The notes under the pieces were generated by a model. The model made no database searches. It saw only the letters and a list, made by a program, of their open reading frames with translations, and had not been told where the DNA came from. A stretch of 61,946 nt of DNA, filler included, from Bipalium vagum (lineage: Eukaryota): NCBI GenBank assembly GCA_037834085.1. It is 3 parts of 3 records of this genome, joined end to end, with 100 filler letters (N's around TTAATTAATTAA, not from the genome) between each part and the next. Parts side by side here need not be neighbours in the genome. Positions count along the whole stretch, not along the records: positions 24,174 to 44,879 come from JBBMKC010248076.1; 2 more parts are not named here. One strand, written 5' to 3'. The translations under genes and the position numbers were made by a program. Positions within the stretch are counted from its first letter, which is position 1. Every line of letters starts with the position of its first letter. This document shows positions 26,181-29,100 of the stretch, piece by piece.

Positions 26181-29100
26181 TTATAAATCCGAAAGTCCGT
26201 ACAAAGAATTTGAAAACGATTGATAATCATATCCGCACACATCACCTCCTGGTCCAGTGTACGGAATCATATGAGCAAGGCAGTACTCCGCCTGTTCCTT
26301 TGGCAGTTCTCGACGAATCTCTTCTTCCGTTATGTAATCCTAAAGGACACAGATATCGATAAACCAAAAATGGGATTTAAGTGACGACTATACCTTGTCG
26401 CCAGCCAAGATCCTAAACGACCGCAAAATCTGATCAGAGCTGTCTTCATCAGCCGTTTCGTGGGTCATAAAATCAATGAAAGCATCAAACGAGACATAAC
26501 CCCCATTTTCCGGATCGACTTGCAACATGATTCTCGAAAAATCTGCTTCTCCCTGAAATGAGAAATCAGAATAAAATTTTCTGTTCATTTCTTCTGAGAG
26601 CTTCTCAAAATCCTGTCTTCTTCAACCACCAAAGTATTCGCATTCCTTTCTTATTTATGTAGTCTCAAAAAATTAATTACCCCTCGTAAGATGTTAAAAA
26701 AACTTTTTGGTGTTTCCCTCAGTAATTTTACAAACTTAAGATAGTAAAACTAAACCTCTAAAAAGAACAAATCAATAATTGAAAAATGTTTGTGCGATAA
26801 ATATCTTTAAATTACAATGAATGAGAATTTTGTAGATAAGAGAATTGGACATTTTGTAGAGATTTTTAGAGAAAAATTTTAAAAATCCATCTATAATATC
26901 TCATTGGATGATTTATGTTGTATATTGCCTTTCTGCATTTCTTTGAATATCAAGGAAAATATTCAATAAATAGAGAAAAAATTAAAGCACCACACACTTG
27001 TTAATTAGCATAAAATAAAAAAATATTTTTAAGCGGTTAAATTAAAATTTTCATATGAGACGCTGATGATATTAAATGGGTAATTAAAAGCATTATTTTT
27101 ATTGATTAATAATAATTATTATTAAAAGCAACGAATGTTAAAACGTCTTGAATAACATTTAACATAGAAAGTTTTCATATATGTTTGTTTGTTCAAATGT
27201 ACTCCAAACCCCATTTTAAATATAAATAAATCAAATATTTTCTTTACTAAAAGGCTCATCACCAGTTTTATCAAATTAAAAATTTAATTAATTAATTTAA
27301 ATATGTTTCGGAAATTTTCAGATTTATCTTTAACGCATCCACGTTGAAAAAAAAGAATTCAAATAAAACCTTATTAAAAAAATATTTAAAATGACATCAA
27401 AATCGATTTTGAGATCTGATTAAAATGTTATTTTACAATTTTTTAAATAAATAACTAAAGTCCGTAAATTTATCAATGTAACTAAAGATAAAGTATGACT
27501 TTAACATTATTTTTTTAGGTCGAATAAAAATTCAATTTTAAGCCAAAATAAATTTAATAATTATCATTATCAGTTTATTTAAAATTCGATCTCGAAATTT
27601 CAAATTAATTTATCTTTTAATAATTAAAAAAGTAATTTCATGTTAAATGAATCTATAATATCTATTCTTATAGATTTTATAATTTGAACTTCCACTTTAA
27701 AAGAAAATCCTGTTCATAAATAACCAATAAATCAAATTAAAATCATTTTAATTCAAAAATTGATGGTCGTTAAATCAAACCCTAAAGTTTTGTTTAATTA
27801 ATATTTCCTTCGTGTTAAGAATTATATTTATAAGAATCCTATAAAAAATGGAGAAAAAGTATATTACATAAGCTTAAGTTTTTAAAGTTAAATACTCTCT
27901 CTCATTTTCACTAGACTGAAAAAAACCTAAAATGACCAAGAGTTTCTGCAACGAATTATTTTCTTTTAGCTTTGTCTCACAGATTTCAATGAATAAAATA
28001 TTGATTTTCATATATAATTGTTAATCAATATGAAAACAAGTAAAATCTATTGAGATAAAATTTTATCGTAAATCGATATTAAAGTAATTTGGAACATTCT
28101 TTTAAATAAATGATAACTTATTGATCGTCAAATAAAAACGTTTTAATTAAAAATTCATGCGAATCACTGCGAACTAATATAAATGAGGAATAGGTTTGAT
28201 TTCGAAACTAACTAGGATGCAATAGATAATAATTATGATTATAAATGTAGCCTTATATAAAAAATGTCAATAAATCAATAATAAATTCATCATGAGCAAT
28301 GAGAAATTCGCGATAAATTTCAATAAATAATTGAATGTAACCCGTTTTTTAATATACATTATAGTGAGTTCTGAGAACTTTATTTTTCTGTTTTTCGAAT
28401 CATATGAATAAATATTTATAAATGAATAATACAAGCGAAATAAAAGCAGGCATATATCTTTAAGCTAGGTTGACTGACTTACCACAGACGGTCTACGAGA
28501 CGTTTGTGTTTCCTACAAATGATAAAAGTTGATGTTAATACCATTCTACTTGTGGTGACATTTCTTTAAGCGGCCATTGATGATTTCAAAATTTACTGCA
28601 CACATTTATTACATCACTTCTCTTTGACCAGAGAAAATCAAAAATATCAATTTCCTTATTTTCTCCTATGCTTAATATTATAAAGACCATATATTTATTG
28701 CTAATAAACTTATGTTACAAGGAAAATGACTTTGAGTTATGTAAAGTTAGGCATAAAAATATAAAAAATGAAACCAGATTTCTCATATGTAAGGAGAGAT
28801 AAATACCTTCCCGTCAACCAACAAAAACGAGTCTGTCAAACATTTAAGTGATGGAATTTGTAGAAATTATCACTATTTTACATGTTTGACAAACCTGTAA
28901 TAAGCTACACTGGAAAATAATTTAAAATATTCAAAACCAATAATAATCAACTTACTTTATCAGAACAAAATTCCTAAAACAATCAAATAAATATTTTTCA
29001 ATCTTTAGAAAGATTGAAAAAATTTTCTTCGTGTAAAAATGTTTTATATATATATTACTATCATTGTGTGAAGTCACTAAACCCATCAATAACAGAAATG

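Follow-up and report, generated by a model that had tools for sequence, protein, structure and literature searches.

Does the long intron between the two EF-hand exons of an alpha-actinin gene hide micro-exons, and if so, how many? The question is raised by a locus of Bipalium vagum (Eukaryota; GenBank assembly GCA_037834085.1), which lies in the stretch of DNA analysed here (the window; 61,946 nucleotides (nt), consisting of three parts of three records joined by 100 filler letters between each part and the next). The part at positions 24174-44879, from record JBBMKC010248076.1, carries on its minus strand a complete alpha-actinin gene whose intron 15 separates the exon for EF-hand 1 (EF1) from the exon for EF-hand 2 (EF2). 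A preliminary description of this intron had proposed a cluster of three micro-exons, here called blocks a, b and c (Table 1), which would be spliced in various combinations. We consider it likely, with a probability of roughly 0.74, that block c is a genuine 30-nt, frame-preserving cassette micro-exon, the counterpart of an exon present in cestodes, trematodes and some spiralians, and that blocks a and b are products of chance.

The raw observations of the preliminary description are accurate. The positions, lengths and flanks of the three blocks are present letter for letter; the translations given for them, including that of the 10-nt form of block a joined to the 26-nt block b (10+26) and that of block c, are correct; and the host intron is the fifteenth of the coding region, is of phase 0 and lies between the exons at 30601-30323 and 26552-26394, with a measured length of 3,770 nt (30322-26553).

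A candidate micro-exon and its counterparts in relatives

Block c encodes ten residues, RRPSV among them, and is bounded by in-frame stops, the first being the TAG of its acceptor, directly upstream, and the second lying five codons downstream. Splice sites were scored with donor and acceptor weight matrices trained on the gene's own 16 introns, the real sites being scored leave-one-out; real acceptors had a median of about 4.5 and real donors ranged from 0.5 to 9.1 (n=16). Both the acceptor and the donor of block c fall inside the ranges of the real sites (Table 1).

The EF1-EF2 linker was read in every homologue found. Most alpha-actinins pass directly from ...DDKQ to GEADF, and in a subset a short insert stands precisely where the two exons meet. 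Two of these inserts were found in RNA-like contigs: P0003 has DTDSLSRRMSISTV between DDKQ and GEADF, within an uninterrupted open reading frame (ORF) of 981 nt on a 1,390-nt Logan contig (L002) that we take to be RNA-derived because no introns interrupt this ORF, and P0005 has VPSGDRRRLSTV between EDKQ and GDTEF on an RNA-like, intron-free Joint Genome Institute (JGI) contig (L003). The motifs in these two contigs are RRMSI and RRLST, and a further protein, P0287, carries the insert TKSGSKSRTLSQ. In parasitic flatworms the insert reads RKTSVDT in Taenia, Echinococcus and Mesocestoides, RTPSIDT or RKPSID... in Hymenolepis, SVTSSNAVV or SVTSANAVV (preceded by KRG) in Fasciola and Fasciolopsis, and SLPNL-x-SGSRGSVC in all schistosomatids; public gene models containing the micro-exon are available for these six genera as well as for Schistosoma, Trichobilharzia and Heterobilharzia. 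The inserts share a core consisting of a basic residue at -3 and/or -2, a serine, and then Val or Ile.

In the genomes of four relatives, the insert is encoded by a micro-exon within the EF1-EF2 intron that is single, flanked by AG and GT, and of phase 0 on both sides. It measures 21 nt in Taenia crassiceps (L008; RKTSVDT) and in Hymenolepis diminuta (L010; RTPSIDT), 27 nt in Fasciola hepatica (L011; SVTSSNAVV) and 42 nt in Schistosoma mattheei (L009; SLPNLASGSRGSVC). Every relative examined for an insert had one single micro-exon encoding a hydrophilic peptide. Block c resembles these exons in its intron, in its phase on both sides, in being single and a multiple of three, in its AG/GT flanks, and in its hydrophilic peptide with a basic residue two to three positions ahead of Ser-Val/Ile (RRPSV here; RKTSV, RTPSI, KRG-SV and SRGSV in the relatives). 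Because the relatives carry a cassette exon with a like motif in the same phase-0 intron, block c is probably a genuine exon, as the preliminary description had proposed for a 30-nt block adding RRPS between the EF-hands. Relatives match block c in position, phase and the basic-x-x-Ser-Val/Ile motif; the peptides of blocks a and b had no counterpart in any relative examined. Block c differs from the flatworm exons in its length (30 nt vs 21, 27 and 42 nt), in the rest of its peptide, which is unalignable, and in missing the UGCAUG that stands just past the cestode exon; in addition, its host protein, about 50-57% identical to those of the flatworms in question, is placed outside their clade by a tree of the C-terminal domain.

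In that tree, exon 15 groups with P0006 (UPI00060A3F42; support 94/95), outside the well-supported clade formed by cestodes and trematodes, and the host protein is about as close to molluscs as it is to annelids, arthropods or flukes, with 50-60% identity to each. A real block c would thus mean that the micro-exon also occurs outside the parasitic flatworms. An exhaustive HMMER search returned no cluster representative with more than 66% identity, except for short partial matches to the EF-hand half of the exon. A word search with the EF1 exon gave one match, a schistosome-like genomic contig (L001) that ends ahead of any micro-exon; the intron following the EF1 exon on this contig contains a tRNA-like stretch (1321-1400; gggttcgaat...) resembling a tRNA-derived short interspersed nuclear element (SINE).

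One apparent further case was rejected. The metagenome contig L004 (P0058, ~380-441) reads DDKQ-ASRRNSP, but here the ORF runs on past a GC donor (cag, gcaagt) into the intron. The EF1 exon of this contig ends in a donor of the GC-AG type, and the read-through ASRRNSP mimics the micro-exon motif by accident.

What chance alone would produce

Short open blocks with proper splice sites are plentiful in this gene. At thresholds that admit blocks a and b, intron 15 contains 32 pseudo-exons of 9-60 nt in sense and 18 in antisense orientation, and the other long introns contain 5-9 per kilobase (kb). Intron 15 contains 45 open in-frame AG..GT blocks, and dinucleotide shuffles predict 43.8. Three small blocks with proper splice sites, as listed in the preliminary description, are therefore in themselves no more than chance would supply. 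We judge blocks a and b to be AG..GT pseudo-exons that arose by chance in an AT-rich intron and that form no part of the gene: their acceptors score below all but one of the 16 real acceptors, 32 comparable pseudo-exons exist, and relatives offer no counterpart.

The same evidence bears on the original proposal, in which micro-exons of 10 or 15 nt, 26 nt and 30 nt make up a combinatorial cassette. All three blocks do have AG and GT flanks, the 10-nt and 26-nt pieces together restore the frame without a stop, and block b coincides with the island of intron 15 that ranks second in GC content. However, the frame-restoring pair is unremarkable because it is only one of the many pairings possible among 32 candidate blocks, block b by itself shifts the frame, the acceptors of blocks a and b score below those of nearly all real introns (Table 1), and the relatives have one hydrophilic micro-exon each, none of which resembles CSLLQ or the 10+26 peptide. 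We thus regard such a cassette as very improbable, and the cluster as such does not survive the comparison.

The motif singles out block c. Of 301 open AG..GT blocks in the six long introns (both strands), one has R[RK]xS[VILMT], and this one is block c. An open AG..GT block with the motif arose in 2.6% of 3,000 dinucleotide shuffles of intron 15 (p ~0.026), and one whose acceptor and donor scores were also at least equal to those of block c arose in 2 of 5,000 (0.04%, p 0.0004); the motif and the score thresholds were picked post hoc, which makes these figures indicative only, and dinucleotide shuffling erases local GC structure. Is block c then a chance pseudo-exon like the other two, with RRPSV appearing by coincidence in a part of the intron that is locally rich in GC? 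Pseudo-exons are indeed abundant (32 in intron 15 at permissive thresholds and 10 at the thresholds of block c), the number of open in-frame blocks matches the shuffled expectation, the motif appears in 2.6% of shuffles without any selection, and the search of sequencing runs described below yielded DNA contigs only and no RNA support. Nevertheless, block c agrees in motif, position, phase and single-exon layout with micro-exons verified in the genomes of four relatives and in two transcripts, and the rate expected by chance drops to 0.04% once the splice-score thresholds are applied, so that we hold this explanation to be unlikely.

Several further points count against block c as an exon with a kinase-type site, in addition to the post hoc choice of thresholds. 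Its donor consists of an unusual GTG ahead of gtaagt, and its score of 3.5 is level with that of the second weakest real donor (n=16). The closest homologues are only 46-66% identical, and the homology of the exons is deduced from position, phase and motif rather than from alignment statistics because the motif is short and the lengths differ (21-42 nt). Because Arg and Pro codons are themselves GC-rich, the motif and the GC island cannot count as two separate lines of evidence. The UGCAUG seen after the cestode micro-exon is absent here, no TGCATG being present anywhere in intron 15. A search of sequencing runs with a mostly intronic 4.2-kb query returned one DNA run, the contigs of which are continuous through the intron, a result that is uninformative on expression. 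Finally, no micro-exon phosphopeptide was found in those parts of the supplements to the phosphoproteomes of S. mansoni (PMC7089424) and E. granulosus (PMC10654641) that were accessible. In the accessible part of the former, only Tyr sites were seen for Smp_014780; the latter, in its accessible part, lists the protein only as W6UY26, the accession of an exon-less model.

The composition of the region deserves separate consideration. Block c, itself 50% GC, coincides with the GC-richest 30-nt stretch of intron 15 (50-53% GC, the intron as a whole having 22.5%, exons 38% and introns overall 23%). Further GC-rich islands (46-50% GC) are found within 400 nt of it, at 28789-28841, where block b is located, and at 28545-28583. 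Given that three of the six GC islands of intron 15 fall within 400 nt, the islands at 28841-28458, a span running from block b through block c, could be imagined to constitute a non-coding element, namely a regulator of splicing or transcription, a small RNA, or the decayed fragment of a mobile element. An Rfam search of intron 15 produced no match even at E<=1, and contig depth over the islands is 24-52 as compared with ~23 for single-copy sequence (about 1-2x), far under that of the repeat near 29126-29279, which speaks against a high-copy repeat. As a non-coding origin would also leave the in-frame, stop-bounded motif match unexplained, it appears to us a most improbable account of block c.

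Cassette or constitutive exon

Pairs of gene models with and without the micro-exon exist in several relatives. Models from the same assembly of H. diminuta differ by exactly the micro-exon (VUZ47163 vs VUZ47162, 908 vs 901 amino acids (aa)), and so do models of M. corti (A0A5K3EZQ3 vs VDD81674, 907 vs 900 aa) and of E. granulosus (CDS16144 vs XP_024354698). In Fasciola, THD23125 (F. hepatica) contains the exon and a model of the same cluster, UPI000613EDB8, does not; among schistosomes, RTG87701 of S. bovis skips it and other Schistosoma species include it. Such a picture is to be expected of a cassette exon, or of a micro-exon that is often missed.

Block c might accordingly be constitutive, that is, always included and never an alternative cassette. 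The exon is present in most schistosome models, and gene predictors often miss micro-exons, so that the models seemingly skipping it may be annotation gaps. On the other hand, the two H. diminuta models come from one assembly and differ by exactly this exon, most spiralian transcript contigs have no insert of any kind at the junction, and joining exon 15 directly to exon 16 gives a canonical linker, colinear with human alpha-actinin. We therefore consider constitutive inclusion rather unlikely and favour a cassette exon.

In cestodes, the intron following the micro-exon starts with the same 14 letters, gtacatttgcatgc, in T. crassiceps (L008 6177-6190) and H. diminuta (L010 5931-5944). The conserved UGCAUG within these letters suggests that the exon may be under splicing control of the RBFOX type in cestodes.

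Location of the insert and possible mechanism

The natural product P0003 served to locate the insert within the protein. Aligned with human alpha-actinin-2 (7ank_B, E=1.3e-100), its insert lies opposite the gap between ...GYD and LGEAEF. In an AlphaFold model of P0003, made from a 28-sequence alignment (mean predicted local distance difference test score (pLDDT) 83.5), the exiting helix of EF1 spans residues 191-200 and the entering helix of EF2 residues 223-236; the insert forms a coil between these helices, and pLDDT is below 50 over residues 208-221. The residues of block c would, by homology to P0003, make up a flexible loop on the surface without disturbing the EF-hand pair.

These data are compatible with the following scenario. 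Block c would be spliced into some or all of the mRNAs of this organism, and its inclusion would insert ten residues into the flexible linker running from the exiting helix of EF1 to the entering helix of EF2, with the EF-hand fold kept. The insert would present an exposed Arg-Arg-x-Ser-hydrophobic site, a motif favoured by basophilic kinases of the PKA type. The serine may be phosphorylated by such a kinase, and phosphorylation could alter the control that the calmodulin-like domain exerts on actin cross-linking. In cells that include the exon, this regulatory domain would thus become kinase-addressable.

Comparison with known systems

The principal cross-linker of actin in Z-discs, dense bodies and adhesions is alpha-actinin, whose activity is regulated at the C-terminal calmodulin-like domain. 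In chordates, alternative splicing of exons 19a and 19b of ACTN1 and ACTN4 yields a Ca2+-sensitive or a Ca2+-insensitive EF-hand 1, and the brain form has both exons (PMC4550062, PMC4435478). According to a review, this splicing arose in chordates, and alternative splicing within the calmodulin-like domain is regarded as a chordate innovation (PMC4550062). The alternative segment of chordates ends at a junction identical to that of block c, directly ahead of G-E-A-E/D-F of EF2 and in the same calmodulin-like domain; vertebrate proteins that contain both 19a and 19b have an extra segment directly ahead of GEAEF, which agrees with the remark of the preliminary description on vertebrate splicing at this place (PMC4550062). 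The two systems nevertheless differ in kind. In chordates, homologous duplicated exons swap the second half of EF1, whereas here EF1 is encoded whole in exon 15 and block c would add a linker loop without any exchange of the Ca2+-binding loop. A tblastn search with each exon detected no duplicated 19b-like exon in the piece. A weak tblastn match at 27975-27922 (E=2.4) was considered as a duplicated EF exon and rejected, as it has no usable donor.

Tissue-regulated microexons of animals measure 3-27 or 3-30 nt, are typically neural or muscle-specific, and depend on SRRM3/4 or RBFOX. Block c resembles them in being very short and frame-preserving, in its long flanking introns, and in its predicted insertion into a surface loop of a folded domain; its cestode counterpart shares with them the conserved UGCAUG downstream. 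Signals of the SRRM4 or RBFOX type were not detected at block c, the 33 nt that precede the acceptor being free of TGC, and the RBFOX-type hexamer is missing from intron 15 as noted above. With regard to phosphorylation, R-R-x-S/T-hydrophobic is the textbook preference of PKA. The RRPSV of block c fits this consensus exactly and, by homology, would be situated in a disordered, exposed loop; the resemblance to PKA sites is that of a motif match only.

Literature searches uncovered no paper describing an alpha-actinin micro-exon in flatworms or other invertebrates. The finding suggests that tapeworms, flukes and one or more additional invertebrate lineages have a second splicing device at this junction, unrelated to that of chordates, in the form of a tiny exon that adds an exposed kinase-type site and leaves the Ca2+ loop unchanged. 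More speculatively, and with less than even confidence, the EF1/EF2 micro-exon could be an old spiralian invention that predates the separation of the present lineage from cestodes and trematodes and that serves, in particular cells, as a switch for basophilic kinases (of the PKA, PKG or CaMKII type), having arisen independently of the chordate 19a/19b exons at the same junction. For annotation, block c would be a concrete case of a micro-exon passed over by gene predictors. For parasite biology, the counterparts point to an isoform-specific, possibly kinase-controlled form of a major cytoskeletal protein of muscle and tegument.

Host gene and other features of the locus

The alpha-actinin gene runs on the minus strand from an ATG at 43027 to a stop after ...LSDL at 26184, and comprises 17 coding exons and 890 codons with consistent phases, in a piece that is very AT-rich (GC 20-32% in 1-kb windows). 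Domain and homology searches were run exon by exon. Pfam CH was recognized in exon 2 (E=5.5e-12) and exon 4 (E=1.9e-17), so that the N-terminal pair of calponin-homology domains is present, Spectrin in exon 9, EF-hand in exons 15 and 16, and EFhand_Ca_insen in exon 17 (E=3.7e-16); the gene is colinear with alpha-actinins across all exons. Its 16 introns (26340-42928) are sharply bimodal in size, ten having 44-106 nt and six having 1,434-3,770 nt.

Table 1. Coordinates and splice-site scores of the candidate blocks and of the exons and intron parts around them.
Feature	Position	Strand	Length (nt)	Acceptor score	Donor score	Description
Exon 15	30323..30601	-				End of spectrin repeat 4 and EF1; ends LKEDK, then gtaaaa; phase 0; Pfam EF-hand_6, E=1.6e-6
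Intron 15, upstream part	28513..30322	-	1,810			From exon 15 to block c; contains blocks a and b and the high-copy repeat near 29126-29279
Block a, 15-nt form	28895..28909	-	15	-0.2	7.1	CSLLQ; after ttattttccag, before gtttgt
Block a, 10-nt form	28895..28904	-	10	-0.9	7.1	From the inner acceptor
Block b	28807..28832	-	26	-0.8	7.4	After gacag, ends AAG, before gtattt; alone shifts the frame; on GC-rich island 28841-28789
Block c	28483..28512	-	30	4.6	3.5	Phase 0 on both sides; after tttgtag, ends GTG, before gtaagt
Intron 15, downstream part	26553..28482	-	1,930			From block c to exon 16
Exon 16	26394..26552	-				EF2; after ag, starts GEADF; phase 0

The EF1 loop of the host gene has Arg at position 6, where Gly is usual. 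The preliminary description had observed this residue correctly in exon 15; Arg at this position is common in alpha-actinins of the mollusc, annelid and flatworm type (DKNRTRRLEP and similar), and is therefore a lineage-wide trait that is not peculiar to this gene. EF2 is devoid of the acidic ligand at position 12, as it is in human alpha-actinin.

Three other features of the gene may be recorded. The high-copy repeat in intron 15 (29126-29279) reaches a summed contig depth of 8,121 in run X1, compared with ~23 for single-copy sequence, and many contigs break there. An (ATA)20 microsatellite occupies 30672-30731, ~70 nt upstream of the acceptor of the EF1 exon. Intron 7 (37728-37787; 60 nt) is in frame and free of stops, for which reason a single ORF of 158 aa spans it; its retention would add 20 residues to spectrin repeat 1 with the frame kept.

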